Source of the DNA: Octopus sinensis
Taxonomy: Eukaryota
Length of the DNA stretch: 64,000 bases
Direction: 5' to 3'
Assembly: GCF_006345805.1 (NCBI RefSeq)
Contig: NC_043014.1
Location: 36,766,001-36,830,000 of the forward strand
The notes under the pieces: model-generated
Told to the model about the DNA's origin: nothing
Seen by the model: only the letters and a program-made list of their open reading frames with translations
Database searches by the model: none
Part shown: piece after piece, positions 32,861 through 55,008 of the stretch
How positions within the stretch are numbered: position 1 is the stretch's first letter
Layout: every line of letters begins with the position of its first letter
Position numbers and translations under genes: made by a program

Positions 32861-33671
32861 GATATATATATAACGTACATATATTATAGTTGCATTACTA
32901 TGTATGTACGCTTATGTATATACGTGTGAGTTTGAGTGTGTGTGTGTTTATGTGTGTGTGTATTTGTGTGTGTGTGCCTCTGTGTGTGTGTGTGTGTGTG
33001 TGTGTGCGCGTGTTTGCACTCTGCCGACGATCCACATTCAAATTCCACCATCCCCAGTCCATTGTTCGTTGCGAACGTTTAGGCTAAGTTCTGCTGGAAA
33101 GCTGTTTACATCAGTCTGGAATCCGTTGACGTGCTCGATTTAGTCCGTCCACATACCTATGTAGAACCTTGATACTCACTGACTCTATGCAAGTGCTATC
33201 AATCGAACGGTTTCTACCCATGGGTTTCAGAGATCAGGAGCTAGTATGAACAACGCATCCTTTGTGATTTGAGTTGAGGAAATGATCAATGATTATTTCC
33301 ACTACAATTATGCCGTACGACTTTATCCGTTCGCCTTCTAACATATAACCTACTGCCTTTTCTGATCTACTACCCTCTTTTGCTACCACTTTGTTAAAAC
33401 TAACAATGAAATTGGGAACATTCAGAATGGCATTCTTAACATATTCCTAATTACTAATTACATAGAAATATACATGCATACTCGCATGCAAAAGACATAT
33501 ACGCGCATGAAAATATAGATATACGCATGTCAAAAATATGCAAAACTAATACACATACGTATTTAAAACTAAGCTTGCTCACTGATCTGAGGCTAATAGC
33601 AACAATTTTTTTAAAAAGCGATAAAATATTAACCAATGTGAACCAAGATAAGTAGCTCAGCTTTTGTTACG

Positions 33672-33975
33672 TCATTCCAAACTGATAGTTCGCGCAATTT
33701 CTGTTCCAAATGCTTTGCATGTGAAAGTTGTGTAATCTAAGTCTTTCTCTGTTACAAGGTAGTAATACTCCGCATCTACCACAACAAAGCATTTGTCACT
33801 ATGTGGAACTCTCTGTATTTTATAGAGCTTAAGCCATAGATCGGGAGTCCCTATGGTCCATTTAAAAGTGACAGTTGGTGGAGAAGGTAACCCAACATTG
33901 CTGTACATCTGAAGATCCATGGTCTTACGAAGGTTTTATCACTGACCATTCCCAGAGACTGTATATGAGATTTCG
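33672..33975 (-). pseudogene. Middle-cassette C exon with a 1-nt deletion near 33897 (real frameshift or consensus error)
   Basis: Otherwise matches 37651-37955; caacattg vs caacaattg. This cassette has many other 1-nt deletions. Confidence 0.6.
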
Positions 33976-35772
33976 CTGGAAAAAAATGAATCAATATATG
34001 TAATTCTTTCAACAATAAGCCTCACAATAAATATTGTATATTTACACTGATGAAAATTACAATCTTCGTACAACACTGAAATATTTAACAACACTTCCGA
34101 TGGACCCTTTTCGTTACTGGTTCCAAGTGTTCAAATATCTAACTTTATAACAAAAGCAATGCTTAAGCAACGTAGAGCCAGACTAATGACAATAACTATA
34201 GAGACACAGATACAATCATGCACGTATATACATGTGTATGTATGTATGTATGTATGTATGTATGTATGTATGTATGTATGTATGTATGTATGTGCATGTT
34301 TGAAAGACGCTCCTTTTCTTTCAATAGAGTCTTCCTTGGAAAACAACTCCAATGGACGTGAGTTGTTTCCGAGCTTTCCATCTACTTTTCTACTGTTTTC
34401 GTCACTAAGGAATATTTTTAGATGTTTGGGAGAATTAATTTTTCAAAACCCTTTACTTTCATATCTATTTTATCTCTCCTCAGCTCTTATGCTGGACACA
34501 ATCATTTAGAAAATGCGAACATTTGAAACGATGTACTCTTTACACTTTTACTTGTTTCAGTCAGTTGACTGCGGCCATGCTGGAGCACCGCCTTTAGTCG
34601 AGCAAATCGACCCCGGGACTTAGTCTTTATAAGCCCAGTACTTATTCTATCGGGCTCTTTTGCCGAACCGCTAAGTGACGGGGACGTAAACACACCAGCA
34701 TCGGTTGTCAAGCAATGCTAGGGGGACAAACACAGACAGACACACACCCCACACACACATATATATATACATATATACGACAGGCTTCTTTCAGTTTGCG
34801 TCTACCAAATCCACTCACAAGGCATTGGTCGGCCCGGGGCTATAGCAGAAGACACTTTCCCAAGATGTCACGCAGTGGGACTGAACCCGGAACCATGTGG
34901 TTGGTTAGCAAGCTAGATGTGTGAACTTTCGTAAACAAAGTTTGTATAGAATTGGAAGCTACCTGTTGGAATGTTTCAGCTATAACGAAAAAAACACATT
35001 CAAAGCGTTCTGAGACTATAAGGACACTGCAATTTATCCAACATGCTCCAAATTTTATCGATGATGATCTCGGAAAATCAATGGGAGCCATCACTAAATA
35101 AAGTCTGCAATACACGGGAAATCCGTTTTATCCATACCAAACAGTTATTTAAGAAGGTTGAAAACCTTCACGAACATGGCAAGCTTTCGTTCTTCTCTGA
35201 TCAGAAGAATCTCAACCAGATGGTTATGTACTGATTCTTCTGATGCGTTGAGGTGCTAAGACCTGAATAAATGAAGTACGAAGTGGAAGTCCACCTTCAC
35301 ACAAATCCATGTAACTCAAGAATGGATTTCAGGCAATCTTTACTATCATGCAACGCAAAACTTGTATTTCGACAAAAATCTCTTTTTCTTATCGAATTAC
35401 ATTTCGCTTTCGCTAGATTAGAGTCATTTTATTAAATTACCAAATATTCCTTAAATGTTTCTCGCACCTTATACATCAATTAGCGAAGCATCCACTTCAA
35501 TCTCCCGGAAGTAGTACAACTATGCACTGTACATATTTTCTAGAGTACTTTCAACACACTTAGAAATGTTGAATTTCTAAATGTCTCAGAGAGACATGAG
35601 CGGTGGTGGGGCGATATAGTGGTTGTATACTGTCAACTCAGCGTGACAAAGGAATCACACCACTGCTATTTAGCCCTAGGAAGCATCGACGCTTCCTGTC
35701 GGCTTTGACACATTTCCTGTGTCCTTATATTTGCAAAGGGGAGGCAAGGACCCCCGCCAGCTAGGATTAGCA

Positions 35773-35818
35773 CCTGAAGACATGCATGTTTCTGGGTCTT
35801 GCCCATCATCAGTCCAGG
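35773..35818 (-). ncRNA. Type I hammerhead ribozyme, middle cassette
   Basis: Identical to 39760-39805. Confidence 0.9.
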
Positions 35819-35845
35819 GTAGTAAGTCCTGCTAGCTGAGATGGC

Positions 35846-36343
35846 TATATAAAACTGTAGTTGTGTGAGTGTCTGTCCCCTTCGATTTAGATTCCTAACT
35901 ACTCCCACATTTTGCGGTGCAGTTTAACCAAATTCGGGTATCTTATAGTTGTGATTCATATCGAGCCCGTCTGAGTATTAGCGCGCGTCTACGATGAGTC
36001 TACGATTTTAAAAATAATTTAACATCATTTTTTATTCCATTTTAATGCATAATTTTTCGTGTGTCAATGGCGGCGGAGTTGGCGTCCATGGTAACACCTG
36101 CACCTGTTTGCTTCTCCCCTTCCTCGTGAAGCTGTGGGGAAGGGAGTGTAAGGAAATCAACGTCGTAAAGCGTTGTCAAGGAGACCAGCATTCTTTTAGA
36201 ACAACGACTTCATGGCTTGAAGACACCAAAATAGAAATGGCTAAGAAAGCCCGAATTGACATCTATAAGGGAAGTAACTCTCTAAAAATGCTTATATAGT
36301 TATTTCCCTTACAAACCCGAGCAACGCCGGGCGATACGGCTAG
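35846..36343 (+). mobile_element. Non-autonomous Helitron at cassette junction 2
   Basis: Near-identical to 31862-32357. Confidence 0.85.
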
Positions 36344-36809
36344 TAATCTAATAAAAGCTATTTTTTGTATTCGATTATCGGTGACGTCACTGGATAATGA
36401 AAGTATAAAAAATAAACATAAGAATTCTACGTTACAACAATTAGAGAGACTTCATGCAAATTAGTTATCTATTTATTGAATTTAATAAACAATTTTAGAG
36501 AAATCATGCATATCATATAACATATAAAAAGCAATTACAATCAAAAATAGGAATATTTAAAAGCCTTCCGAAATTTGTGGCAACATTTCATTGTAAAATT
36601 CCTATCAAAATTTAATAAAATTAATTTAGAAGTAATTACGCAGCCTGCTTTCCAACCACATAGCTCCGGGTTCAGTCCCACTGCGTGCCACCTTGAACAA
36701 GTGTCTTGTGAGTGAATTTGGTTATCGGAAACTAGAAGAAACCCGTCGAATATGCGTGTGTGTCTTCTAGTATGCATCTTGTACGTATGTATATATGTGT
36801 ATGAATGTG

Positions 36810-36846
<37 letters not shown>

Positions 36847-36953
36847 GTACATATATATATATAGTTGCATTACTATGTATGTACGCTTATGTATATACGT
36901 GTGAGTTTGAGTGTGTGTGTGTTTATGTGTGTGTGTATTTGTGTGTGTGTGCC

Positions 36954-36985
<32 letters not shown>

Positions 36986-37650
36986 TGTTTGCACTCTGCC
37001 GACGATCCACATTCAAATTCCACCATCCCCAGTCCATTGTTCGTTGCGAACGTTTAGGCTAAGTTCTGCTGGAAAGCTGTTTACATCAGTCTGGAATCCG
37101 TTGACGTGCTCGATTTAGTCCGTCACATACCTATGTAGAACCTTGATACTCACTGACTCTATGCAAGTGCTATCAATCGAACGGTTTCTACCCAGTGGGT
37201 TTCAGAGATCAGGAGCTAGTATGAACAACACATCCTTTGTGATTTGAGTTGAGGAAATGATCAATGATTATTTCCACTACAATTATGCCGTACGACTTTA
37301 TCCGTTCGCCTTCTAACATATAACCTACTGCCTTTTCTGATCTACTACCCTCTTTTGCTACCACTTTGTTAAAACTAACAAATGAAATTGGGAACATTCA
37401 GAATGGCATTCTTAACAATATTCCTAATTACTAATTACATAGAAATATACATGCATACTCGCATGCAAAAGACATATACGCGCATGAAAATATAGATATA
37501 CGCATGTCAAAAATATGCAAAAACTAATACACATACGTATTTAAAACTAAGCTTGCTCACTGATCTGAGGCTAATAGCAACAATTTTTTTAAAAAGCGAT
37601 AAAATATTAACCAATGTGAACCAAAGATAAGTAGCTCAGCTTTTGTTACG

Positions 37651-37955
37651 TCATTCCAAACTGATAGTTCGCGCAATTTCTGTTCCAAATGCTTTGCATG
37701 TGAAAGTTGTGTAATCTAAGTCTTTCTCTGTTACAAGGTAGTAATACTCCGCATCTACCACAACAAAGCATTTGTCACTATGTGGAACTCTCTGTATTTT
37801 ATAGAGCTTAAGCCATAGATCGGGAGTCCCTATGGTCCATTTAAAAGTGACAGTTGGTGGAGAAGGTAACCCAACAATTGCTGTACATCTGAAGATCCAT
37901 GGTCTTACGAAGGTTTTATCACTGACCATTCCCAGAGACTGTATATGAGATTTCG
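37651..37955 (-). CDS. Gene B exon 3 (proximal cassette): C-like Ig domain ending ISLE*
   Basis: Acceptor ttttttccag|CG (G+CG = Ala), 305 nt. Contains PWIFRCTAIVGLP, FKW and KDLDYTTFTC. Confidence 0.85.
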
Positions 37956-39547
37956 CTGGAAAAAAATGAATCAATATATGTAATTCTTTCAACAATAAGC
38001 CTCACAATAAAATATTGTATATTTACACTGATGAAAATTACAATCTTCGTACAACACTGAAATATTTAACAACACTTCCGATGGACCCTTTTCGTTACTG
38101 GTTCCAAGTGTTCAAATATCTAACTTTATAACAAAAGCAATGCTTAAGCAACGTAGAGCCAGACTAATCTGACAATAACTATAGAGACACAGATACAATC
38201 ATGCACGTATATACATGTGTATGTATGTATGTATGTATGTATGTATGTATGTATGTATGTATGTATGTATGTATGTATGTATGTGCATGTTTGAAAGACG
38301 CTCCTTTTCTTTCAATAGAGTCTTCCTTGGAAAACATCTCCAATGGACGTGAGTTGTTTCCGAGCTTTCCATCTACTTTTCTACTGTTTTCGTCACTAAG
38401 GAATATTTTTAGATGTTTGGGAGAATTAATTTTTCAAAACTCTTTACTTTCATATCTATTTTATCTCTCCTCAGCTCTTATGCTGGACACAATCATTTAG
38501 AAAACGCGAACATTTGAAACGATGTACTCTTTACACTTTTACTTGTTTCAGTCAGTTGACTGCGGCCATGCTGGAGCACCGCCTTTAGTCGAGCAAATCG
38601 ACCCCGGGACTTAGTCTTTATAAGCCCAGTACTTATTCTATCGGGCTCTTTTGCCGAACCGCTAAGTGACGGGGACGTAAACACACCAGCATCGGTTGTC
38701 AAGCAATGCTAGGGGGACAAACACAGACAGACAGACAGACACACACATATATATATACATATATACGACGGGCTTCTTTCAGTTTGCGTCTACCAAATCC
38801 ACTCACAAGGCATTGGTCGGCCCGGGGCTATAGCAGAAGACACTTTCCCAAGATGTCACGCAGTGGGACTGAACCCGGAACCATGTGGTTGGTTAGCAAG
38901 CTAGATGTGTGAACTTTCGTAAACAAAGTTTGTATAGAATTGGAAGCTACCTGTTGGAATGTTTCAGCTATAACGAAAAAAACACATTCAAAGCGTTCTG
39001 AGACTATAAGGACACTGCAATTTATCCAACATGCTCCAAATTTTATCGATGATGATCTCGGAAAATCAATGGAGCCATCACTAAATAAAGTCTGCAATAC
39101 ACGGGAAATCCGTTTTATCCATACCAAACAGTTATTTAAGAAGGTTGAAAACCTTCACGAACATGACAAGCTTTCGTTCTTCTCTGATCAGAAGAACCTC
39201 AACCAGATGGTTATGTACTGATTCTTCTGATGCGTTGAGGTGCTAAGACCTGAATAGATGAAGTACGAAGTGGAAGTCCACCTTCACACAAATCCATGTA
39301 ACTCAAGAATGGATTTCAGGCAATCTTTACTATCATGCACCGCAAAACTTGTATTTCGACAAACATTTCTTTTTCTTATCGAATTACATTTCGCTTTCGC
39401 TAGATTAGAGTCATTTTATTAAATTACCAAATATTCCTTAAATGTTTCTCGCACCTTATACATCAATTAGCGAAGCATCCACTTCAATCTCCCGGAAGTA
39501 GTACAACTATGCACTGTACATATTTTCTAGAGAACTTTCAACACACT

Positions 39548-40036
39548 TAGAAATATTGAATTTCTAAATGTCTCAGAGAGACATGAGCGGTGGTGGGGCG
39601 ATATAGTGGTTGTATACTGTCAACTCAGCGTGACAAAGGAATCACACCACTGCTATTTAGCCCTAGGAAGCATCGACGCTTCCTGTCGGCTTTGACACAT
39701 TTCCTGTGTCCTTATATTTGCAAAGGGGAGGCAAGGACCCCCGCCAGCTAGGATTAGCACCTGAAGACATGCATGTTTCTGGGTCTTGCCCATCATCAGT
39801 CCAGGGTAGTAAGTCCTGCTAGCTGAGATGGCTGCAACCGCTTTTCAAATATATAATATTTTCAGTGAAATTTATTCACTGGTTACCAAAATTAGAAATA
39901 TTGAATTTTTAAAATGTCTCAGAGAGACATGAGCGGTGGTGGGGCGATATAGTGATTGTATACTGTCAACTCAACGTGACAGTCCCGTAAAGGGAATCAC
40001 ACCACCTCTATTTAGCCCTAGGAAGCATCGAATATA
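39548..40036 (-). mobile_element. Retrozyme-like insertion (~1.4 units of a ~346-bp repeat) carrying the hammerhead
   Basis: Flanked by direct repeat tttcaacacact (39536-39547, 40037-40048). Internal direct repeat 39548-39672 vs 39894-40031. Absent from the matching intron of gene A. Confidence 0.7.
39760..39805 (-). ncRNA. Type I hammerhead ribozyme, intact core, in intron 2 of gene B
   Basis: Minus strand: cctgga CTGATGA tggg caaga ccca GAAA catgcatg TC ttcagg. 6-bp stem I, 4-bp stem II, palindromic stem III, GUC site. Confidence 0.9.
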
Positions 40037-40184: not shown

Positions 40185-40505
40185 CTTTCATAAACTTAGC
40201 TTTCGAATTTTCTGAGGAAGTGCCACATTTGTAGTATGCTACATCTTTGCAAGTGGGATTTCGTTTCCAACAGGTAACTACACCTTCATTACAATAAGTT
40301 AAAGTACACTTGAAACCATCCTTACTGAATTTTGTTTCAAATATGCGTGTGGGCCTGTGGCATTCAAGATATACAACTATAACATCGTTTCTAAATAGTT
40401 TGAAATTAAGACGATTCCCCGCATTATACTGACATGTCATAGTTATTTGAGATGTCTCTCCAAAGCGAATACCATCATCAGGCGTCATTTTCGTTATCGC
40501 AAAAT
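40185..40505 (-). CDS. Gene B exon 2: V-like Ig domain (FAITKMTPDDG...TMTC...VTCWKRNPTCKDVAYYKC...FMK)
   Basis: Acceptor ttacttgtag|AT, donor AAAG|gtcagt, 321 nt. About 61% aa identity to the gene A V exon by hand alignment. Confidence 0.85.
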
Positions 40506-40558
40506 CTACAAGTAATAAATAAATGAGAGATAGATTTTTTTTTAATATATCATTTTAG

Positions 40559-40810
40559 AAGAAGAAGAAGAAGAAGAAGAAGAAGAAGAAGAAGAAGGAG
40601 GAGGAGGAGGAGGAGGAGGAGGTGGAGGAGAGGGAGGAGAAGAAGAAGAAGAAGAAGAAGAGGAGGAGGAGGAGGAGGAGGAGGAGAGGGAGGAGGAGGA
40701 GAAGAAGAAGAGAAGAAGAAGAAGGAAAGGGAGAAGAAGAAGAAGAAGAAGAAGAAGAAGGAGGAGGAGGAGAAGAAGAAGAAGAAGAAGAGGAAGAAGA
40801 AGGAGAAGAA

Positions 40811-40863
<53 letters not shown>
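40559..40863. repeat. (GAA/GGA)n tract upstream of the gene B V exon
   Basis: Direct inspection. Confidence 0.95.
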
Positions 40864-40865
<2 letters not shown>

Positions 40866-41102
40866 ATAAATAACGCCACTGAACAAGATTAACGAAAAGC
40901 AAACGACAGACCAAGCTAAGCGAGGAAACGGCAAGAAGTAAATGAGAAGAAGAGAGTGAACACAAGTCAAACGAAGGAAAAGGGAAAAGAGTGACAGTAG
41001 AAAACAAGGAAAGGTCTGCAGAGAAAATGAGTGAGGAGTTAGAAGCAAAAAAAACAATCAAAAAGAAAAGGAGCTGTCGAAAACAAAAGAAATAGACAGT
41101 AA

Positions 41103-41697
41103 GGCGGCGAGTTGGCAGAAATGTTAGCACGCCGGGCGAAATGCTTAGCGGTATTTCGTCTGTCGTTACGTTCTGAGTTCAAATTCCGCCGAGGTCGACT
41201 TTGCCTTTCATCCTTTCGGGGTCGATAAATTAAGTACCAGTTACGCACTGGGGTCGATGTAATCGACTTAATACCTATGTCTGTCCTTGTTTGTCCCCTC
41301 TGTGTTTAGCCCCTTGTGGGTAATAAAGAAATAGGTATATCGTCTGTCGTTACGTTCTGAGTTCAAATCCCGCCGAGTTTGACTTTGCCTTTCATCCTTT
41401 CGGGGTCGATAAATTAAGTACCAGTTACGCATTGAGATCGATGTAATCGACTTAATCCCTTTGTCTGTCCTTGTTTGTCCCCTCTGTGTTTAGCCCCTTG
41501 TGGGTAATAAAGAAATAGGTATATCGTCTGTCGTTACGTTCTGAGTTCAAATTCCGCCGAGTTTGACTTTGCCTTTCATCCTTTCGGGGTCGATAAATTA
41601 AGTACCAGTTACGCATTGGGATCGATGTAATCGACTTAATCCCTTTGTCTGTCCTTATTTGTCCCCTCTGTGTTTAGCCCCTTGTGGGTAAAAAGAA
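41103..41697 (+). mobile_element. Same SINE with its ~183-bp body triplicated, in intron 1 of gene B
   Basis: One head followed by three copies of tcgtctgtcgttacg...aaagaaa. Confidence 0.85.
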
Positions 41698-41885
41698 ACA
41701 TATATACCTGCCTGTACCGATATTCGGAAGCATGTACAGAAGAAGAATTATGTGTGAGACAGGAATAATAGGATGAAAAACAATTACACAAAATCATAGG
41801 TAATCAAAGGATAAAGGAGGCAAGACTAAAACTGAGTCGTGGAGGTGAAAAAAATAATATGTGACTGATTTAAGTCTTGACTTAC

Positions 41886-41934
41886 AGGCGGAGGTGTAAG
41901 AAGCCATCATCAGTATTTTTATAACTAACAGCAT
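41886..41934 (-). CDS. Gene B exon 1: signal-peptide exon MLLVIKILMMASYTSA
   Basis: ATG at 41934, GTAAGT donor, 49 nt, paralogous to 61936-61984. Confidence 0.8.
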
Positions 41935-42159
41935 TGTTGGTGTTATCGACAGATGGTGAAATGAGTGTCGGCTCCCAGCAACTGAAATATAACCAGTAAA
42001 TCCGCATGGTTTTATTTTGTACGATGTGGAAGGAATGAACGAAGAAAATTACAAAAAACATGATGATAGAATGTGTATGAACGTAGGCAAACTAATATCC
42101 TTCGCACCAGTAAAAGAATGTAAAACACCTGTTGCCATTATGATACTGTGAATACATCA

Positions 42160-42410
42160 ATAGAAAGCATTATAATTGAATTACATAGTGTGAATTATTG
42201 CGTAATAACTCGTCTATTATAAGTAGTGATTGATTTACGAACATAGCACAAATAGAAAGTTTGAAAGTTCTGAAACTGGTTTCTTTCTTTCCCTCGTTTT
42301 TATTAAATTTTTGGCTTTTATATTAAAAATGATCATTTCTTTAAAATTATTCTACAAAATGATGTATTTACAATATTTGTCTATGAAAAGTATTTTCGAT
42401 ATTGCATACA
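42160..42410 (-). promoter_or_regulatory. Conserved upstream block of gene B (putative promoter)
   Basis: Aligns with 62370-62630. Confidence 0.45.
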
Positions 42411-42461
42411 TATATATGTGGGTGGGTGTATGTTGTGTGGTGTGTGTGTGTGTGTGTGTGT

Positions 42462-42760
42462 GGAGGCACATGGCCTCGTGGTTAGAGCAGCGGACCCGCG
42501 GTCGACGGATCGTGAGTTCGAACCTCAGACCGGGCGATGTGTGTGTGTTTATGAGCGAAAACACCTAAACTCCACGCGGCTCCAGCAGAAGGTAATGGCG
42601 AACTTCTGCTGACTCTTTCGCCACAACTTTCTCTCACTCTTTCCTCTTTCATCTTGCAACTCACCTGCGACGGACCGGAGTTCCGTCCAGGTGGGGAACC
42701 TATACGCCAGGGAAATCGGGAAACAGGCACTTATGAGCAAGGCGTGGCTCGAGAAGAAGC
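42462..42760 (+). mobile_element. Third tRNA-derived SINE
   Basis: A-box tggcctcgtggttag and B-box gagttcgaacc. Confidence 0.75.
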
Positions 42761-44935
42761 AAACAAGATATATATATATATATATAAATATTTGATGTAG
42801 GATAACATTTTTTCGAAAAAAAATTTTAGCAATGGCCAGCATATTAAAAAATACCTTTAAAAGTTAAATTTATAAACAACTTATAAATAAGGGCAAACGA
42901 AAAAAATTCTAATGCCAAATATGCCGAAATTAGACACATTGTCCATAACCATTATAATTTTTCACAATACGCACGCTACTCGAAAATGGTCGACAGGAAT
43001 TTCTAAAAAATTCCATTATTACCAACCCTAGGAATAATATATATTGTCCACAGTTTCGTACAAGTGGTTACACAGAACTCAAGATATTACGACGTGCTTG
43101 CAGCAAGAAAAATCATTCATAATTTTCTCGATACGCTTCGCGAAAAGCGCATGGTTCGTAGTAGGGCTCGATCACTGAAATACATGGACTGGGATTTGCA
43201 CAGAATCAGCGTGTATAAAGGCCCCACAGATCTCTAACTTACTTCAAAGAGCACGTCAAATGGTTCCAGACAATGGTGAAAACATGGACAGGAGTTGCAC
43301 ATACACAGATAACACTTAGGTATCTGACGGACTGCGAGGAGCAGGCCAAATGTTTCCAGATAATGGTAGCGGTTTTACAGAAGTACTTGGCCTAAATATT
43401 TTCAAGAAACATCGGATTAGAGATGGTGAATTTTGAGCCTGGATAGTTGTTACAAAGTACTGTAACTTCCGTGAGCTATTGAAATTGCGCTGAATTAAGC
43501 ATTCACTCCATCAAAGATGCTTTTTTCTCATTTTCTCTCGATGTTCTCACTCTTGAGTATCTTACTGCTCAGTTATAGATATTGAAAGCCATATCGCTCT
43601 ATCTAAGATGCAGGAGGAGGAACCGTATCTGCAAATGCGGGAAGTGACCCTATAATGGTGTCAGCACTTTACCGAATGCGTGCGAGATGGTAGCATGATT
43701 GCGCGTTATTGATACGTCAGGTTGGTATTGTTTAAATTAAAATTGAGATGAATTTGCGATCATCGTAACCAGTCTCACTTAAAAATGTGTTGAGCAAAAG
43801 ATGGTTTGAAAGATTAAACGATGATGATTAATGTATTACCGACTAACGGTTAACCTCGTCATAAGAATTCTCTGAGTAGATTGAAATCAATGCAAGGTTT
43901 CCCGGTTCAAGAGATCTATCAACACAAAACATTTATTTCTTGTTGAGTTGTGGGATGGTGAGAGTGATGATGCGAAGGTACGTGAAAATACTGTGCAAAG
44001 GCTTCCCAATAAACCAGTTAGGCAGATATGAACGTCAGTTAAACATATCTTACTCCAGCTATTCTTCTTCACCGAGCTTTTTTCTTGGGACAAGGGCTGA
44101 TAGAAATATATGAGGTTTGATTTTTGAATGTTTCTAGCTACTCACCCTCTTTACTGGCGGGACGTTGAAGTCGGTGAAATGTCAAATTTCTTATTTAGAT
44201 GGAAAATAGGGGCCATGACTGACGATGAAATAGAAAACCTTCTTGATATCTTCAGGGTGTTGAAGCGAAGATTCTACTTGGTGATAATGCCCGAATGTAG
44301 GAATGTTTCAAAAAGTACTTTTGGGATGAGGTCACATTGCCTGATTGCTATGAATTTTACAATCATGTCTATGTGTGTGCAGCCAGCAACCGAACTTGTG
44401 ATGTCTATGAGTGTGCAGCCAAAAACCAAGAAGGCTGCAGAGTGACGAAACGTCTGGTCAGATCTCATTCAGTCCATGCTTTTCTAAATTTTAGCATTGC
44501 CTGTGTGGGATAAATTTTGGGATTCAGCGATTCAATACGTCAATCGAAAATATCAGCACGACGCTTATCTTTAACAAGCAAAAGTATGAATTCATCTTTT
44601 CCTGTCTGGAGGTTATGATAAAGGATTCATACGATGAACAAGGTTGAAAGATTTGAGAACATAGGTTATTTTCCTCTCTAACCAAGTCTTAAAGGGCCAC
44701 TTGAAAAAGAACGTAAAGGAAGATAGTGAGTTACTGTCCTTCAATATATTTTTAAAACGGTGGAAGAAATGGCGGTATTATGGTTAGATGGTTACAGGCT
44801 AATTATGTGACTGTAGGTTGGCGGTAAAATCTGAAGAAACGCATTTTTATTTCATGTATAAGATTAATCAGGTTTTGTTACGTTTCATTCTGTAGACTCG
44901 TTATTGTGCTATTATTAAATGATATTATAATTAAT

Positions 44936-45166
44936 GGCGGCGAGCTGGTAGAATCTTTAGCACGCCGGGCGAAATGCTTAGCGGTATTTCGTCTGCCGTT
45001 AGGTTCTGAGTTCAAATTCCGCCGAGGTCGACTTTGCATTTCATCTTTTCGGGGTCGATTAAATAAGTACCAGTTACGCACTGGGGTCGATATAATCGAC
45101 TTAATCCGTGTGTCTGTTCTTGTTTGTCCCCTCTGTGTTTAGCCCCTTGTGGGTAGTAAAGAAATA
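44936..45166 (+). mobile_element. Same SINE
   Basis: TSD gatattataattaat. Confidence 0.9.
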
Positions 45167-45879
45167 GATATTATAATTAATTAATTCTTATTTTCCAAAA
45201 GGCAACCTTTCTCTTCTACTATACTTGGATGTTGTTTTAGAACAGGGAACACTCCGTTATTTTCTTTGAAAGGACCTGTTGGATGGGCTCGTGATGCATA
45301 ACTGTACTCGTATTTATATCATTGACAGAGGAAAACCGACTGCTGCGATCGCTGAGATTGCCCACTCACGTGAATTCGCCTTGTTTGAGGCACCTCAACG
45401 ACAAGCATCCTGTAGCCACACAACAGCTGATTCTCCAGTGAAAGATATATATAGAATATCAGTGTCTATTCAGGCACGGATGTCCCATATAGCCAGTGGG
45501 CTTATTCAGGACATATTGTGAAATCACGTGATATGGCAGGTCAGGTAGCCCCAAAAGACGATTACCGTGTATTCAGTGCTTGAATAGACACTTATATTCG
45601 TTAACGGAAGAGATTCGGCTGTTATGTTGCTACTGGATGTCTGCCACTGTGCAATCACGTGATCTAGCAGTTCCGGTGGTCGTATCAGAGATAATCGTCT
45701 GTCAAAGATATAAACACGAGTGCCTTTATGCTACACCATCTCATATGACAGGTCCTCTCAAGGTAAAGAATGCAGTATTCCGTGTTCAATATTTCTTTAT
45801 TGGTTTTTTTTTAGCTCACCCTTATATTCGATATAAATCCATTTTATGTTCCACAGTTTGAGCGTCCAGTTTGACCCTA

Positions 45880-46000
45880 CTTGAAGGGTCAGATTTCCTT
45901 TACAAACAAGGAGAGAGGTTCACAATTAAAACCAACTTCACCTGTGCCTCTGAGAACCTAATTTATGTAATAACTTGCTCGAGCAAGTTATTTGTTTTCG
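45880..46000 (+). mobile_element. PLE GIY-YIG fragment, same family as 12190-12790
   Basis: LEGSDF...IKTNFTCASENLIYVITCS. Confidence 0.7.
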
Positions 46001-46283
46001 TACACATTCGCTTGCTTTCTCCCAAAAGATCTAATGTTCTTAGCTTAGAATTTGAGGGCAAACCACATTTAAACAATCTCAAGTGTAACCGGCCGAAACT
46101 GTAAGGATGACCTGCATACTTGACTGATGAGAGAAGGCTGCGAATAACCCGTCCTAGTTTTTCCTGTCCGCCTTTTTGTTGTTTTTCTAGCCCGGCTTTT
46201 TATTGTCTATCTGCTCAGATGCTTTATTGTCGTCTGTAGCGCTCTTGTTCCATTTTTGCATTGATATATATATATATATATAT

Positions 46284-46495
46284 ACAGGGTGCGGTGGATA
46301 AACAATCATCTAAATAACCCAGAAATGAAAATAACTCATTTTAACAGATATATTTACCAAAATTACATGAAAATAACTTGAAACACTAAAGTGTAAATTT
46401 ATACAATAAAATCGCCATTGACTTCAACCACAGCCTCCAGACGACTTCGGAATTCTTCTGGACTCTTCTGGGCGGTCTCCTTGATTAATTTGATG
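46284..46495 (-). mobile_element. Tc1/mariner 3' end fragment
   Basis: TA-CAGGGTG terminus and FRSRLEAVVEVNGDFI* on the minus strand; a related end lies at ~55318. Confidence 0.55.
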
Positions 46496-46704
46496 ATTGC
46501 TACGGTAAAGACAATCAACTTCTCTTATTCAAATTCAAAATGGCTGAAGAGTAGCATGGCACTTCAAATTCAGAGTACCAACGAATTTGAATCAAACTGT
46601 TTTGATTCATACATGTAACTCCCAATAAATTTGTTGAGTGCCCTTCTTTCTTTTGTACACTCACTCGTGTATATATATATGTATGTATATAGATAGATAG
46701 ATAA

Positions 46705-46761
<57 letters not shown>

Positions 46762-46898
46762 CAGATAGATAGGTAGGTAAGTAGGTAGGTAGGTAGGAAG
46801 GTAGGTAGGTAGGTAGGTAGGTAGGTAGGTAGGTAGGTAGGTAGGTATTGATGGATGGACGGATGGATGGATGTGTGTATGTATGCATGTGTATATAT

Positions 46899-46944
<46 letters not shown>

Positions 46945-48061
46945 ATATGAAAAGTATGTACTCTTAATATTGAAAACAACAACCAATAAATGCCGAACAA
47001 AACTCAGAGCATTGTGTAGATTAAATATTTATTTATCACAAAAACGATTACTGTGATTTCGGAGTTCCGCAAAAAATGTCTATTAAACAGCAATCTGTAA
47101 AAATGAAGAATTGTTATCATATGGATGGACTATGCTAAGGTTATGTACGAGGTAAATTATATGCACATTTACATACATATAGATCTATATAAATGTGTGT
47201 GTGTGTGTGTGTGTGTGTGTGCGGGTGTGTGAATATATATTAATGATATTATTATTTACAGATTAGTTAATAACTCAGATAAAATGTAGGGAAAATAAGG
47301 ATAAACACAAGTTTATATTATCCAAATAACCATTATGCGGGCTTCAACATTATGGTTGTTTGGATCCCTGCAGCTGGTGATCCAATGATATTTATATACT
47401 CAGTCACGACAGGTCACAGCAGGAACACGTTATTGCATTAAGTTACTGATAACCATGTCCAGAGCTGGATAGATGGCAAGGCATTTTATAAGTATTTGGG
47501 GAATAGAAAGGAAGCCATTGCGTCCCAGTATTACTATATTTCCCTTTCTCCCATTAACTTGTAGCAGTCGTTGCGGTACTCATTTCGGACCCACATAGAA
47601 TACTTTGAATTTCGTCGTACTATTATGTATTAAACCGTTTCTTTCTTTTTTTTTTTCACCTATTCGAGTGACACTATTATCTACTTTCTACCTTTTCGAC
47701 ACAGTGGTGTTAACCAACTAATTTTAAAATTAGGTAACCCTTCGAGCAGTTTTCACTTATTGAAAGCTTTCATTTCAAACCCAGAAGTGCAGGATTCGCA
47801 TACCTCTACAAAGAAATCTAGAAGGATACGTATGGGTATGTTTCCGGTATTGAAGAGGATAGTAATTTTAACATGAAGTGTAGCGTAGATGCATTCCAGA
47901 AGTTTTGAGACTTTTTTTTAGGTGAGACAGTTACACCTGACCTAGATCATAGGAATTTTACTATAACATTACTACAGGGACACAACGTACCAACCAATCC
48001 AAAACTGAAAACACGATCTCGCGATCGCGAGTGCAGCTTTCTATGCACAAGGCCATACACC

Positions 48062-48099
<38 letters not shown>

Positions 48100-48440
48100 T
48101 TTGCTTTCCATTTCCCATGGAGAACATCGGTAGCACAGAGAGGGAAGACTTGGAAGCTTAGACTAAGTATTCTACGAGACGCTCTTCTAATTCTGCCATC
48201 CTATTCCTCATTAAAAAAAAAAAAGAATACTACAACGTGAGAGAAAAAAGGAAGGAACAATATATTTACCTGCTGTATTAAGAGTTTCTTGGTTGAATGA
48301 TATCTGGTTAATTTCTAGAAATAAAAGTGAAAATGAAATCATATGCAGGAATGGAATAGTTGAAGTTTTAATATGTCTTCGGCGTTTTCCTTTTCTTTTG
48401 TTTCAAATATCATAGTGTTAAAACTGAAGTATTGTTTTTA

Positions 48441-48669
48441 TTTCTTTACTGCCCACAAGGGGCTACACACAAAGGGGACAAACAAGGACAGACAAACTGA
48501 TTAAGTCGATTATATCGACCCCAGTACGTAACTGGTACTTGTTTAATCGACCTCGAAAGGATGAAAGGCAAAGTTGACCTCGGCGGAATTTGAACTCAGA
48601 ACGTAGCGGCAGACGAAATACTGCTAAGAATTTCGCCCGGCATGTTGAGGTTTCTGCCAGCTAGCCGCC
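48441..48669 (-). mobile_element. Same SINE
   Basis: Sequence similarity to 23250-23475. Confidence 0.85.
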
Positions 48670-50229
48670 CAAAGCTGAAGCATTGTTTTATAAACCGAAA
48701 CCAAAGCTAAATGATATGCATATGTAGAAGTAAAGTTACATTATTTTCAAGCCTAGCCAGGCTCAAGGGCCCAGTTTCCCGGTTTCTATGCAGGTCACTG
48801 TCAGCGTTATGGTCTTCTAATATTTCAGCTTTATCTTTTGTCATTTACTTGTTTCAACCACTGAACAGGGGACTTGCTAGAGTACCGCCGTGAAGGGTTT
48901 AGTTAAACAACCTCCCCCCACCAGTACTTATTTTCTTGAAGTCTGTTACTTGTTTTATCGGCCACTTATGTTGAACCGTTATATTTCGAGGAAGTGAACA
49001 AACCAATACTGATTGGCAAGCGGGATACGGGACAAGCACAACGCACTGGCATACGCGGATACATACATACATATATACATACGTATGTACATACATACAT
49101 ACATACATACATACATACGTACATACATACATACTTGGAAAAGGATGCATGGCGTTCGATCATATAATGTAAATAATAAATAAATATATGCATATATACA
49201 TACATATATGTACATGGGTACAGGACATCAAAAAAACGTTGAACACAATGAGAAACGAAAACATAAAAACAAAAGCATAGAAACGAACTTTTTTTCAAAC
49301 AACGAAAAAAACAGAGAAATGAGACATACAACATAAAGAATATTCCCCCTTCTTCAGTTGTCCCTGTTTTATCTACTCCGCGTTTCAAAGGTAAAGACAA
49401 GACGCGACTTCGATGAAACAGTCCTTTCCGCAAAGCAAATTAAATAAAATTTGGGATTTTTTGTGGAGGGTGAAAGTGGTAACAAGAACAGGACAATGAG
49501 AACAAAACAGTAAAAACAAACGATGAGGGCTGTTAAGCCAAAACGATGGAAAAATTATTCTGAACGTTTAAGGAGACGAGTTTATGAAGAGATAGGATAA
49601 GCCTGTTTAGTAGTCGGAAAGATGGATTCCCTCTCATTACGTGTCAGCGACGAGAGAGTCGAGGAGCAGGAGTGAGAGAGAGGGAACGGTAAAGGGGAGA
49701 GGAGAATAATAGGGAAGGGTGGGGGAGAAAACCATAAAGGATGAAGAACAAGAGAGGAAGAAAGATAGACAGAGAAGAGATAGTAAAGAAGAGAGCGCAT
49801 CGTAATTATTAAGATAAAACTTACTTGGAAACGGGCTTATCCTGTTGTAGGTATGTACATATATGTATGTATGTATGCATATATTTATATATTATTTATA
49901 TTATGTGATCGAACGCCACGCATCCTTTTCCAAGTAAGTTTTATCTTTATCGCGTTGTGCTAATTTCGGGCATTCGCTAACGATCTGTCATACTGTATCA
50001 CCTCTCTCACCACATATTCTGCATTTGTCGCTATAGGTAGTTTTGTCTATTCTGCACTTCATAGCGTTGGTCCTTATCGCTTGTTCCTGAGCTGCACATG
50101 AGTGCTTCTGCCTCTATCTTCAGGTCACTCTTCTTCATCTATAGCCACCGGTCTTCTGTATCTGTTTTGGCGTTCACATCTTTTGCAAACTGACTGTACA
50201 ACTTCTTTTCCTTCTATGCTTTTTCTTTT

Positions 50230-50490
50230 CTTTTTCTTTTTTGTTCATTTCTAATGTTTTTTTTGTTCATGTCTAATGTTTTCTTTCGTTACACAAATTC
50301 CAGTTTTGATGACGCCGGCCTTCGCGTTTCAACAGTGGCTTCACGGCATTTTTTATATACCACCCTAAGCTGTTTTCCTCTGCTTCGATACAGTCCTGAC
50401 AACTAATCAAACTTCTCCCACCCTTTTTTCTGGACAAGTACAGCCTATCGGTGTCACTCTTAGGGTGGAAGGCTCCGTGTACTGTCAACA
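50230..50490 (-). mobile_element. Non-LTR RT C-terminal fragment
   Basis: HPKSDTDRLYLSRKKGGRSL. Confidence 0.75.
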
Positions 50491-50957
50491 TTTTTCAATG
50501 TACACACACACACGCACGTGTATGTGTACATTGTAGCGACGATCAACATTCAAAGTCCGCCATCTTCAATCCATCGTTCGTTGAAAAGGTTTAGGGTAAA
50601 TTCCGCCTTGAATCATTTGACGAGCTCGGTGCAGTCCGTCACATACTTAAATGGAGCCTTGATACCCATTGAGTCATACAATCGCTGTCAGTCGAGCAGT
50701 TTTTACCCAGTGGGTTTCAGAGAACAGGCCCTTGTATGAACAACACATCGTTTGTGATTTGCGTTGAGGAAATGATCAATGATTATTTTTACCGCAATTA
50801 TGCCGTATGACTTTTCCTTGCGCCTTTCTAATCTATGAAATGCCTCTTTCTTCTGATCTACTGCTCCCTATTGTTACGATTAACTAACGAATGAAATGAG
50901 GAACATTCAGAATGGCACTCTTAATAATATTACTAATACCATAGAAATATACATGCA

Positions 50958-51191
50958 AAGGCGGCGAGCTGGCAGAATCGTTAGCACGCCGGGCGAAATG
51001 CTTTAGCGGTATTTCGTCTGCCACTACGTTCTGGGTTCAAATTCCGCGGAGGTCGACTTTGCCTTTCATCCTTTCGGGGTCGATTAAATAAGTAGCAGTT
51101 ACGCACTGGGGTCGATATAATCGACTTAATCCCTTTGTCTGTCCTTGTTTGCCCACTCTATGTGTAGCTCCTGGTGGGCAGTAAAGAAATA
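50958..51191 (+). mobile_element. Same SINE in the 3' region of gene A
   Basis: TSD agaaatatacatgca; absent from the gene B cassettes. Confidence 0.9.
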
Positions 51192-51390
51192 AGAAATATA
51201 CATGCATACCCGCAAGCAAAAGACACATATATGTGTAAAAGTATACAAATACACATGTCACAAACAAATGCAAAAACGAATGCATATATATATTTAAAAC
51301 TAAGCGTGCTCACTGATCTGAGGCTAAATAGCAACAATTAAAAACATTAACCAGGTTGAAACAAAGATAATCAGCTCACCTTTTCTCACG

Positions 51391-51689
51391 TCATTCCATA
51401 TAAATTATTCGCGAAATTTTATCTCCAAATATTTCGCATGTATAATTTGTTATGCCTAAATCTTCCGCTCTTACAAAATAATCCGCGCTTACCTCAACAA
51501 AGCATTTGTCACTAGATGGAACTTTCACTGTTTCTTGGTCAAAAGACATGCCGTTAGACCTCTCTATATCCCATACAAAACTGGCATCACCTTGAGAGGG
51601 TAACCCAACAATTGCTGAACATCTGATGATCCATGGATCTAGGTTTATATTATTATGGAACAATTTCAGACTCTTTATACGAGATCTCA
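51391..51689 (-). CDS. Gene A exon 3: C-like Ig domain, terminal coding exon (PWIIRCSAIVGLP...FVW...DKC...EDLGITNYTC...YME*)
   Basis: Acceptor ctctttctag|TG (G+TG = Val) in phase with exon 2. Cys...Trp...Cys Ig pattern. Stop at the same position as in gene B. Confidence 0.85.
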
Positions 51690-51744
51690 CTAGAAAGAGA
51701 GTGAATTAAAATATGTAAATCTTTAAACAATAAAATATTGGATT

Positions 51745-52076
51745 TCGTTTTTGGAATTCGTTTGCAAGATTCTTTATGTGAGTTCGTGTGTTGAAGCATA
51801 TTCTGTTGTGTCTGGGGAGAGTCATTTTCTTTTTGTGCCTTATAATTTAACACACTCACCGGTAAAATTTCCACTTATTTCTTATTCTTATTTTCCTAAA
51901 ATTTTCGTTGCGTCTTGCAATCTTTTCAATAGCCTTGACTCTTGACTATTGAAAAGGTTGCAAGACACAACGAAAATTTTAGGAAAATAAAAATAAGAAA
52001 TAAGTGGAAATTTTACCGGTGAGTGTTTTAGATTATAAGGCACAAAAAGAAAATGACTCTCCCCAGAAACAACAGA
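51745..52076. repeat. Foldback insertion (~135-bp arms, 13-nt spacer) in intron 2 of gene A
   Basis: Arms ~51798-51933 and 51947-52082; 12-bp flanking duplication aaaatattggat. Confidence 0.85.
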
Positions 52077-52699
52077 AAATATTGGATGTTTTCACTGATA
52101 AAAATTACAATCTTCATACAACACTGAAATATTTAACAATGCTTTCGATGGACCCTGTCAGATGATGCTTGAAGAATGCCAATCAGACAATAACTATACA
52201 GACACAGATACAATCATACACGTATATACATATGTATGCATGTTTTATAACGTGGATCTGTATATGTCACCTTAGTGTCGTGCACTAATACAATGTATCA
52301 CGGAACGGGTTAGACACAAACTGTCTCCAGTTGATGTATTCGCAAATACTCTACCAGCAACTGTAACCAATATAACAACTTCTCAACAATTTTCCTGCGA
52401 CACCACGAACTCACAAACGACACCTTTCGGCTTACTGAGATTTTTCTTGTGCTACTTATACGAGTTCAGCTAGTCCATTCTCACAGCTGTTATGAAACTC
52501 GCCGTAACATCTCCCCTTTTGAGATTTGACTTCTGCAGGAAATGCAACTTGTTTATTTAATTTTATTCTTTTTTTTTTTCATCATCACCTTTCTCTTTTT
52601 TGAGATTTTAATTTCCTCTGAAGTTTTAATGCTTCTTTGGCTGGGGGACTATTTCTAGTTGTTCTGTTTGTTTATGTTTTCTACTGCTGATCCGCTTAG

Positions 52700-53565
52700 A
52701 TTCAACCTCTTTTGGCGTTGAAACATCTAACAAGTCATAACAAGCTTTCATCGGTATTTCTTCTCTTTCTTCAGTATATCTAGTCTTCAACTGGTTCAAA
52801 TGCCGTTTCTGCTATCCTATTTGACCTTTTATTATGTACATCATAATTATTCTTTTCGTCACTATACCGTCCTCCCAACATTGTCTTCCATTTTCATATA
52901 TTTTGAAATGAATTTTATCTCCCACATTAAAATAATTTGTTTTATTTCTTGGGTTTTCCCTATAAGTTTTTTGTTGGTAACTATTTATCAATAATTGATT
53001 TCATCTTCCGGGCAAACATTAGCTCTGCAGGTGACTTGCCTGTAGAGGTGTTCGGGTTAAGTGTTACCCTGTAAACTCTTAAGAATTGAGTCAGTGTTGC
53101 ATCATTGCCTAATTCCTTTCCTGCTTTTTTTAGTACCCGTTTAAATATATCTTCGAACCTTTCTGCTTGCCCATTCGATCTCTCACAGAAATTTCAAATT
53201 CGTACCCCGAAAACTGCATTCCGTTATCCGATAATATTGTGTTCGGGACACCGTATCGCGCAAAAAGTTCGTGAAGAAACTTCATTGTTACCTTCAATGT
53301 TGGTTGACTGCATTTACATATCTCAGACTACCTGGTGTAGCTCCCTACTATGATCAGATAATACGCGCCGTTTACCAGTCCAGCAAAATCTATATGTAGC
53401 CTGGACCACGGACTGCCTGTCTGAGGCCACGATTGGAATTTCGCCGGTGGTGACTTTGCTGCGAGAGCACAACCTCTGCAAGATATCACCATTTGTTCAA
53501 TATCATGGTCCATAGCAGACCAATACACGTGACTCCTCATTACTGATTTCATTCTTGAAAAACCT
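52700..53565 (-). mobile_element. Gypsy integrase relic in intron 2 of gene A
   Basis: HPGFSRMK...CRGC zinc finger, RLHIDFAG, FARYGVP...SDNG. Confidence 0.85.
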
Positions 53566-54687
53566 GGGTGTCCCATATGAAATTAACTTAATACAGGCTT
53601 TGGTAGTGTGGCTGGCACTACAACTCTTTGTGCATACATCAACACATTATCACAAAGAGAAAAATGGTTCACATTTATTTTCTTTTACCTTCAACGTTTC
53701 TTTCCTCTTTGCAATAAATTTGTCATTCTCCGATTTTAGTTTTATATCTTAAACAGTTACTTACAGCACCCGAATGAAATTCAGGTGTCGGAGTGGAAAT
53801 TTAGTGCACGAGGACATGCGATACAAGTAGCATCAGATGTCCAAGTAGAAGAAAGCTAATTAACATCTGCAAATACATAGGAAAACCGTTTGATCTATAT
53901 CAAACAGTTATTTAAGGAGCTTAAAAACCCTCACGACCATGGCTAGCTTTCGTCCTTCTCAGATAGTTATGAGCAGATGTTTTGATGCGTTGAGGTGCTG
54001 GAAACAGCTAATTAAGCCCTGTATAGATGAGTTACGAAGTGGACGGTCATATGTGTTTCGACATAACCTTTGCATCGTCACACAAACCCATGTAGTCCAA
54101 GAATGGATGATAAGCAATCCTTACAATCATGCAACACAAAACTTGTGGCCTCCAATCTCCTCAGATGATCTACTAGGTTTCAAACATTGCTGAAAGAGAA
54201 ACTCATAAAGATCCTCATAATACCACAGCTTCACTGAAGGCCGGTATTGTCCAAATGACGACCGAAATTGATAAAGTCCATTTAATGCAGGCATGTCAAC
54301 AATTCCGGTTTCGCATCGAAGAATCAAAGGTGAAAACGGATTTACAGAATAATAGTTTTATAAGAAAGCTTATTGAGAACTCATGCACAATTTTTTATCG
54401 AACTACATTTCGTTTTCGCTAGATTAGAGTAATTTTATTAAATTACCAAATATGTCCTTAAATGTTTCTCGCACCTTATACATCAATTAGCGAAGGCATC
54501 CACTTCATTCTCCCGAAAATAGCACAACTACACACTGTACATATTTTCTAGATTACTTTAAACACTATGAAAAACAGAAATCTAAAAACAAAAGTAAAGT
54601 TGCACAGGAAAAACATGCAATAAAAATAACACTTCTGAAAATCAATAATAATGGAAATGCATTAGTGAAAAAAATAGTAAAACTAAC

Positions 54688-55008
54688 CTTTCATAAACCT
54701 AGGTTTCGAAACTGCTATCATAGTGCCACATTTGTAGTGTGCTACATCTCTGCAAGTGGGATTTCGTTTCCAGCAGGTAACCTCACCTTTATTGCAATAA
54801 GCTAAAGTACAGTCGAAACCATCCTTATAGATAATTCTTTTAAATCTTTTTGTGGACTTGTAGTATTCCATATATACAACTAAAACTTCGTTTCTCAATA
54901 GTTTGAGATTAAGAAGGTTCTTCATCTTATACCGACATGTTATAGTCATTTTAGATGTCATTCCAATGTCAATACCATTAGCGGGCGTCATTTTTGTTAT
55001 AGCAAAGT
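54688..55008 (-). CDS. Gene A exon 2: V-like Ig domain (FAITKMTPANG...ITC...VTCWKRNPTCRDVAHYKC...FMK)
   Basis: Acceptor cttacag|AC, donor AAAG|gttagt, 321 nt open frame. B-strand Cys and D-x-A-x-Y-x-C F-strand motif. Same length as the gene B V exon. Confidence 0.85.

Follow-up and report, generated by a model that had tools for sequence, protein, structure and literature searches.

The stretch of DNA analysed here (the window) comprises 64,000 nucleotides (nt) of Octopus sinensis, contig NC_043014.1, positions 36,766,001 to 36,830,000. This report concerns two immunoglobulin-like genes on its minus strand, called gene A and gene B, and the selection that acted on them. Long stretches of the window are 98–99% identical to the O. 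vulgaris chromosome record OX597833.1, and its identity to O. bimaculoides CM046620.1 is ~87%. The window is AT-rich animal DNA, in which microsatellites and transposon remnants are abundant. Genes A and B are intact three-exon paralogs of 224 and 222 amino acids, respectively, with complete open reading frames (ORFs). In each gene the first exon encodes the signal peptide, the second is V-like, and the third is C-like and includes the stop codon. The introns are in phase 1 at both the leader/V and the V/C junction, and all splice sites are canonical GT/AG. The exons, which encode predicted immunoglobulin (Ig) domains, are as follows.

41886..41934, minus strand: gene A exon 1, start codon and signal peptide MLLVIKILMMASYTSA plus 1 nt, GTAAGT donor, phase 1 (sequence reading, translation)
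40185..40505, minus strand: gene A exon 2, V-set-like Ig domain, 321 nt, phase 1-1, AG/GT splice sites (AlphaFold2 model, Foldseek)
37651..37955, minus strand: gene A exon 3 (copy C1), C-like Ig domain and TGA stop
61936..61984, minus strand: gene B exon 1, signal peptide MLLVIKILMMTSYTTA plus 1 nt, GTAAGT donor, phase 1
54688..55008, minus strand: gene B exon 2, V-set-like Ig domain, 321 nt, phase 1-1
51391..51689, minus strand: gene B exon 3, C-like Ig domain and TGA stop

Exon 1 of gene A is 100% identical in O. vulgaris. In both genes the stop codon directly follows domain 2; we therefore infer from the sequence that the products of A and B are small, secreted, two-domain proteins. Gene A is collinear with O. 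bimaculoides LOC128250270, its positional ortholog, which shows 71% amino acid identity to A in a gapless alignment. Gene B is annotated in none of the species looked up. For the O. bimaculoides ortholog, the 10 kb preceding the V exon contained no leader-like exon with at least 69% identity.

The V exons of A and B differed at 63 of 321 nucleotides and at 41 of 107 amino acids, with seven codons showing silent differences only. The C exons differed at 99 of 297 aligned nucleotides and at 57 amino acids; 42 amino acids were the same, four codons showed silent differences only, and there was one in-frame 6-nt indel. An earlier reading of this DNA, made from the letters without database searches (the sequence-only reading), had counted ~63/321 nt, 41 amino acids and ~5 silent-only codons for the V exons, and ~98/299 nt, ~57 amino acids, ~4 silent-only codons and 42 conserved residues for the C exons, so its figures were closely reproduced. 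The Nei–Gojobori method (NG86) gave a nonsynonymous rate (dN) of 0.351 and a synonymous rate (dS) of 0.222, resulting in a dN/dS ratio (omega) of 1.58 (Z = 2.27, Fisher p = 0.029). Across estimators omega ranged from 1.4 to 1.75. The Goldman–Yang codon model (GY94) on a star tree of A, B and the O. bimaculoides ortholog gave an omega of 1.54, and the likelihood-ratio test (LRT) against omega = 1 gave p = 0.04.

Non-coding DNA was used as the neutral reference. The sequence-only reading had described the flanking non-coding blocks as more similar between A and B than the exons, ~93% in one block and roughly 80–90% elsewhere. The first block is real and showed 91.4% identity, but the second figure was too generous, as the blocks ranged from 67 to 92%. 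The block in question lies in intron 2 of both genes.

39372..39544, minus strand: intron-2 block of gene A, 91.4% identical to 54391-54565 in gene B, 98% in the core
54391..54565, minus strand: intron-2 block of gene B, partner of the gene A block 39372-39544

The overall A–B non-coding identity was 83% on 1285 gap-free three-way columns and 76% in pairwise global alignments, the latter with one misaligned stretch (38009-38300) included. Exon identity was 74–76%, and that of the C exon 67%. The A–B p-distance was 0.171 on the 1285 non-coding columns and 0.258 in the exons. Exon conservation thus does not exceed that of the flanks, and the C exon falls clearly below it.

Rates on the single branches were obtained by splitting the changes by parsimony and comparing the replacement rate per site (pN) with the non-coding rate. 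The neutral yardstick was 1271 gap-free non-coding columns aligned among A, B and the O. bimaculoides ortholog. In these columns 56 unique changes fell on A, 55 on the ortholog and 139 on B, which is clock-like for the tree ((A, ortholog), B). The A/B duplication is therefore older than the split of O. vulgaris and O. bimaculoides. In the exons, A had 53 unique changes, the ortholog 17 and B 93. The Tajima relative-rate test of A versus the ortholog gave p = 1.7e-5 for the exons and p = 0.92 for the non-coding columns. Relative to the non-coding rate, pN was 2.08x on branch A (p = 3e-4) and 1.43x on branch B (p = 0.01); on the O. bimaculoides branch it was 0.56x (p = 0.09). The synonymous rate (pS) approximated the non-coding rate on each of the three branches, and therefore the excess is confined to replacements and to the O. 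vulgaris lineage.

The fold was read from an AlphaFold2 (AF2) structural model of the O. bimaculoides ortholog. Its predicted local distance difference test score (pLDDT) was 85 and its predicted template modelling score (pTM) was 0.75. The model shows two beta-sandwich domains, domain 1 (D1) with nine strands including C' and C'', and domain 2 (D2) with seven. DSSP placed strands 36-44 and 49-55 between strands C and D of domain 1, as for C'/C'' of a V-set domain. The best Foldseek matches in the PDB were CD4 D1D2, butyrophilins, Epstein–Barr virus (EBV) BARF1, and antigen-binding fragment (Fab) and T-cell receptor (TCR) chains, with a probability of 1.00, E values of 1e-6 to 1e-4, and 10–16% identity. 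Cysteines in the predicted strands B (ITC / FRC) and F (YxC / xTC) of both domains were invariant or near-invariant in 10 family members. The strand-F motif DxAxYxC of domain 1 was invariant at D88, A90, Y92, and C94. The strand-C Trp is invariant in domain 2 (FxW), while domain 1 has Phe/Leu instead (FKL) and carries 3–5 extra cysteines. The total number of cysteines in B is odd. All of domain 1, strand G too, is encoded by the V exon, which ends in ATGAAAG, followed by gtcagt, an ordinary phase-1 donor that is spliced to the C exon. The V exon has neither the recombination-signal ending of a V segment of the Ig/TCR type nor a separate J segment. The exon ends of A and B are shared by the paralogs of O. 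vulgaris and O. bimaculoides. Pfam detected no further domain beyond the two, and neither a chitin-binding nor a fibrinogen domain.

Word-indexed searches returned nine octopus proteins of this kind, all annotated as 'uncharacterized', and an exhaustive profile search returned at least 44 clusters at 50% identity. The named members that were looked up came only from O. vulgaris, O. sinensis, O. bimaculoides, and Argonauta hians. The family was described nowhere in the literature searched by LOC identifiers and by topic. Judged by these searches, it is octopod-specific and apparently undescribed. Its members include secreted V-C proteins, one form whose mucin-like stalk is rich in Thr/Pro, and a transmembrane one whose tail contains Tyr. 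The O. vulgaris locus carries three more V-C units and one pseudo-V exon downstream of A. A 104-kb segment of O. bimaculoides carries, in both orientations, no fewer than six intact units together with four pseudo-V exons.

The site models M0, M1a, and M2a were fitted to 11 V exons and 12 C exons with our own GY94 F3x4 implementation on neighbour-joining (NJ) trees. All of the V exons (11/11) and C exons (12/12) examined had open frames. For the V exons the M0 omega was 1.34, and M2a improved on M1a by a 2ΔlnL of 58.1 (60.7 with all branch lengths re-optimised); the selected class had an omega of 4.9 in 17–19% of sites. For the C exons the M0 omega was 1.36 and 2ΔlnL was 42.9 (45.4 with all branch lengths re-optimised), with an omega of 3.2 in 39% of sites. 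Hence dN/dS, which the sequence-only reading had taken to exceed 1, remained above 1 with more sequences, and in both V and C the LRT supports a codon class with dN/dS > 1, the mark of diversifying selection. In 12 data sets per domain simulated under the fitted M1a, 2ΔlnL was at most 2.0 (V) and 7.4 (C), and the M0 omega was 0.5–1.0. The clade of A, B and the ortholog alone rejected M1a for V (14.5, p = 7e-4) and C (16.9, p = 2e-4). The second subfamily alone gave M2a versus M1a values of 43.9 (V) and 21.3 (C).

V sites with a posterior above 0.8 were S17, Q24, H48-I53, S95-S96, and A101, numbered 0-based from the F of FAITK in the gene A V exon. Mapped on the structural model, Q24 directly follows the B-strand Cys, H48-I53 run from the last part of C' through the C'C'' loop into the first part of C'', and the FG loop contains S95-S96. 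These places are equivalent to complementarity-determining region (CDR) 2, CDR3, and the edge of CDR1; the BC loop had weaker support. The second subfamily independently showed the same V hot-spot places. In four independent sister pairs, a comparison that needs no tree, amino acid differences were found at 23 of 56 positions in the CDR-equivalent loops and at 64 of 368 elsewhere (p = 1.4e-4). The selected sites of the C domain were widely spread, with a dense run in TPDLWLKLYKIQR. The C-like domain is even more pervasively variable than the V-like domain (39% of sites, omega ~3), and the variable/constant analogy therefore fails.

Between A and B themselves, the V-exon differences showed no general enrichment outside the predicted strands (p = 0.69). 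They were enriched in the three CDR-equivalent loops (10/14 versus 31/92, p = 0.016), with the loops taken from the structure model and defined post hoc. Sliding-window clustering was weak, and the sole window size with p < 0.05 gave p = 0.02. The sequence-only reading had placed three clusters of differences at the positions of CDR1/2/3. All three match selected regions, but the signal at the CDR1-equivalent (BC loop) is weak. The 'TSSEN/TMIAV' difference predates the split of A and its ortholog, as A equals the ortholog there, and the version in B resembles the other subfamily.

The window was also compared with the O. vulgaris reference. Gene A exons differed at 1 of 675 positions and the flanks at 65 of 4917 (p = 0.004), so the exons were ~9x more conserved. 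Gene A is now constrained, and the replacement burst is older. Episodic adaptive selection fits better than standing hypervariability.

Taking these results together, we read A and B as tandem paralogs of an octopod-specific family of secreted Ig V-C recognition proteins under diversifying selection, and give this reading a probability of roughly 0.7. The duplication preceded the split of O. vulgaris and O. bimaculoides, and in the O. vulgaris lineage both copies gained amino acid replacements faster than neutral DNA. Fast replacement while the cysteines, the domain-2 Trp and the reading frames are kept indicates positive (diversifying) selection. In domain 1 this selection would be focused on two loops, C'C'' and FG, and on the position that follows the B-strand Cys, all at the ligand-binding tip of Ig V domains, and in domain 2 it would be spread broadly. 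The hot spots may form a binding surface, and the role may be immune, gamete or other recognition. The sequence-only reading had proposed strong diversifying selection on such a surface; positive selection is supported by the site models and branch rates, but the surface role is deduced and the selection looks episodic. The family could then be a germline-encoded repertoire of soluble recognition proteins of the birth-and-death kind, diversified by tandem duplication and by selection on contact residues, and a choice among duplicated C exons may add variety.

Several points weigh against this reading. The A–B pairwise dN/dS excess is by itself marginal, merely suggestive, and when the V or C exon was tested separately, omega was not significantly greater than 1; the excess becomes clear because the non-coding neutral reference was used and the rest of the family was added. 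The gap-free alignable non-coding columns may evolve more slowly than DNA that is truly neutral. Our own implementation of the codon models takes no account of recombination and was checked only by the 12 null simulations per domain; site-model tests can be inflated by gene conversion among tandem paralogs and by multi-nucleotide changes. Of the changed codons, 5 of 23 in the loops and 0 of 64 elsewhere differed at all three bases. With the Pfam Ig models (ig, V-set, I-set, C2-set, Ig_2, Ig_3) no family member passed the threshold; the best match was Ig_2 (E = 0.017–0.11, 13–16 bits versus a cut-off of 27), and several members had no hit at all. A profile search of PDB sequences gave nothing significant. 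The Ig assignment therefore rests on the predicted structure. The labels V-like and C-like, which go back to the sequence-only reading, are reasonable at the fold level (AF2, Foldseek), but curated Ig sequence-family membership is not demonstrated.

Part of this would also fit relaxed constraint, in which A and B are incipient pseudogenes drifting neutrally after duplication (omega ~1) and the replacement excess is sampling noise. That neither exon alone was significantly above omega = 1 agrees with such drift, as do the NG86 pairwise omega values of 0.8–1.2 among the paralogs compared, the pseudo-V exons and the frameshifted C copy at the locus, and the failure of any Pfam hit to exceed the threshold. 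However, M2a was far better than M1a, though M1a already has a neutral class, and pN exceeded the non-coding rate on branches A and B. When 162 neutral substitutions were placed at random, the frame stayed open in 0.8% of trials (P = 0.008), and the non-coding alignments contained 1066 gap columns against one in-frame 6-nt indel in the exons. The Cys, the Trp and the DxAxYxC motif are invariant family-wide, and the gene A exons are conserved versus the O. vulgaris reference, so that we consider relaxation quite improbable. A mutational cause is also unlikely, if somewhat less so. Here short-patch conversion from family members, or multi-nucleotide mutation, would overwrite loop segments and be misread as omega > 1. 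At least 44 sequence clusters could act as donors, there is one conversion-like A–B intron patch, and the triple-nucleotide codon replacements were confined to the loops, where the NG86 pS was nominally higher. This raised synonymous rate was traced to path-averaging in multi-hit codons and was rejected; silent-only codons in the sister pairs were equally frequent in the loops (2/33) and elsewhere (13/304). On branches A and B pS matched the non-coding rate. In a donor test against the paralogs p3–p5, no excess of shared derived bases was found, as A-specific derived bases were shared with them at 9 of 53 sites versus the ancestral base at 27 of 53. Conversion would moreover be expected to homogenise the copies unless selection retains variants.

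The sequence-only reading had itself named recent conversion of the introns as an alternative, by which the exons would merely appear fast. Such conversion did occur in all probability, as the block 39372-39544/54391-54565 showed an A–B divergence of 0.107, lower than the 0.141 of either copy to the ortholog, and is a probable short gene-conversion patch. It is limited to 177 columns, the only ones where A and B resemble one another more than either resembles the ortholog. In the six remaining non-coding blocks A was nearer to the ortholog and the B branch was long, and outside the patch the non-coding DNA was clock-like on the tree given above. The branch-A excess was measured against the ortholog and is independent of A–B intron similarity, and replacements outran non-coding changes on branches A and B alike. 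Conversion does not explain the intron similarity, and we give this alternative hardly any weight.

Several known systems can be compared with the octopus family. IgV-IgC ectodomains (CD4 D1D2, BTN2A1/BTN3A1, BARF1, antibody/TCR chains) have the same predicted fold and domain order, a nine-strand V followed by a seven-strand C. Butyrophilin and BARF1 reached template modelling scores (TM-scores) up to 0.55–0.61 versus the octopus model in Foldseek. The B/F-strand Cys, the DxAxYxC motif, the arrangement of one domain per exon, and phase-1 introns are shared. The octopus family differs in its 10–16% identity, in a D1 without the strand-C Trp, and in the extra cysteines. The octopus A and B products are also predicted to be secreted, with the stop directly after domain 2, and there is no V(D)J rearrangement.

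Amphioxus V region-containing chitin-binding proteins (VCBPs) are secreted proteins with two V domains and a chitin-binding domain, and form a germline multigene family diversified without somatic rearrangement. The octopus family is likewise invertebrate, predicted to be secreted, of V-type Ig and germline-diversified, but it is V-C only and no sequence relationship was detected. Snail FREPs and related mollusc lectins of the immunoglobulin superfamily (IgSF) are secreted proteins; in FREPs, IgSF domains are joined to a fibrinogen domain. Their families are expanded and diversified and are candidates for immune recognition. The octopus family is also of a mollusc, secreted by prediction, IgSF-like and expanded, but lacks a fibrinogen domain, and all of its named members that were looked up belong to Octopoda. 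KIR/LILR, CEACAM/PSG, NITR, and SIGLEC likewise form tandem birth-and-death clusters with pseudogenes, inversions, and secreted beside transmembrane forms, and likewise show positive selection on the ligand-contact loops of the N-terminal V-like domain. Unlike these vertebrate clusters, the octopus family would be of independent cephalopod origin, and its membrane-proximal-type domain is also pervasively selected. Arthropod Dscam resembles it in the tandem Ig-exon duplicates within one gene (three C copies behind the gene A V exon; LOC128250269 X1/X2). In contrast to Dscam, gene A has only 2–3 copies, of which one is frameshifted, and they are terminal exons with their own stops; their alternative use is putative.

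Cephalopod immune and recognition molecules are poorly known, and the family offers a concrete testable candidate repertoire in a long-lived mollusc with a complex body. It is lineage-specific, tandemly expanded and invisible to Pfam, and the loops selected are those that antibodies and TCRs use. The family would show Ig V domains repeatedly evolving variable tips without rearrangement machinery. A further-reaching view, which we hold to be doubtful at present, is that octopods have their own germline-diversified Ig V-C system of non-self recognition, either immune or between gametes, with a chromosomal cluster of dozens of secreted, mucin-stalked and transmembrane genes and CDR-like selected V tips. 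If this were true, a V exon joined to alternative duplicated C exons could multiply variety, in a cephalopod counterpart of VCBPs, FREPs or Dscam. If the function were reproductive or chemosensory instead, the family would still be among the fastest-evolving octopus gene families described.

The window contains further copies of the family exons, as follows.

28262..39833, minus strand: three tandem ~4-kb units, each with one C-exon copy and the 3' part of intron 2, 96–98% identical (self-BLAST)
33672..33975, minus strand: copy C2 of the gene A C exon, in the middle unit, equal to C1 save for a 1-nt deletion that shifts the frame
29573..29877, minus strand: copy C3 of the gene A C exon, intact acceptor, open frame, TAA stop; also in the O. 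vulgaris reference
7917..8053, minus strand: degenerate V-like pseudo-exon belonging to this family, interrupted by stops and frame changes (tblastn, three-frame translation)

The O. vulgaris reference has two of the ~4-kb units versus three in the window, so the copy number varies between close genomes. C3 and C1 differ at 7 nt in the coding part, and all seven are replacements (7/7); the neutral probability of this is ~0.15, and the result is uninformative. C3 could be an alternative terminal exon of gene A. For O. bimaculoides LOC128250269, the NCBI isoforms X1/X2 have the same leader and V exon and different C exons that lie 68 kb apart. Their exons, at 16656-16979, 21930-22250 and 89976-90308 of the O. 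bimaculoides locus segment (L004), span other family genes, and the isoforms reflect either alternative splicing over a long range or an artefact of annotation. A single recognisable subtype of degenerate V-like pseudo-exon (MTPADGIEVG…TCWKANPTCEAV), to which 7917-8053 of the window belongs, is found repeatedly among the intact genes of both species. Pseudo-V exons elsewhere lie at L004 9740-10015, 28822-29112, 46924-47238 and 63270-63564, and at 61280-61522 of the O. vulgaris locus segment (L002, OX597833.1).

No AATAAA or ATTAAA was found within 600 nt of any C-exon stop. Most family members have a GT donor-like site (…AAAAG followed by GTRAG) ~5–25 nt past the C-exon stop; in gene A it is GC. 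In the window these sites lie ~5–15 nt below 37651 and 51391, and in the other segments at L001 12368-12390 and at L002 ~47751-47770, 69245-69275 and 87104-87125. With no poly(A) signal near the stops and with donor-like sites behind them, the 3' transcript ends are uncertain. The post-stop donor-like sites, together with the transmembrane (Argonauta) and mucin-stalk members, suggest that secreted forms arose from membrane forms by gain of a stop, or that an untranslated downstream exon exists. Long (GAA)n/(GGA)n microsatellites occur at 40556-40860 and 55063-55228, ~50 nt ahead of the V-exon acceptor in either gene. Read on the coding strand, they form a very long polypyrimidine (TTC)n before the 3' splice site, which is kept in both paralogs.

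Repeats are found in and around both genes. An interspersed repeat of ~184–236 nt, resembling a short interspersed element (SINE), occurs at 41103-41706, 4052-4424, 23247-23480, 44936-45171, 48439-48669 and 50957-51191; three head-to-tail copies lie in gene A intron 1 and one copy in the gene B 3' flank. An element of ~130 nt occurs twice in gene A intron 2 (39547-39676 and 39892-40031, 88% identical, 345 nt apart) and is absent at the matching place of gene B. Intron 2 of gene B contains a retroelement remnant with an integrase zinc-binding domain (52629-53582, minus strand, Pfam E = 9e-10), which accounts for much of the extra intron length versus gene A.

Farther from the genes, direct repeats of 1.25 kb (13193-14437 and 19462-20703, 97.8% identical) flank a segment of 22–23% GC with long minus-strand ORFs. 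This segment looks like a retroelement of the long terminal repeat (LTR) type or similar; Pfam found nothing in two of its ORFs. A PIF1-like helicase ORF on the plus strand at 58445-59218 (Pfam E = 7e-57) probably belongs to a Helitron-type element, of which there is a partial second copy (6094-6725 versus 58937-59569, 96.5% identical). Two mariner-type transposase remnants with broken frames lie on the plus strand at 10723-11777 and 63097-63691 (Pfam Transposase_1, E ~3e-24 each).

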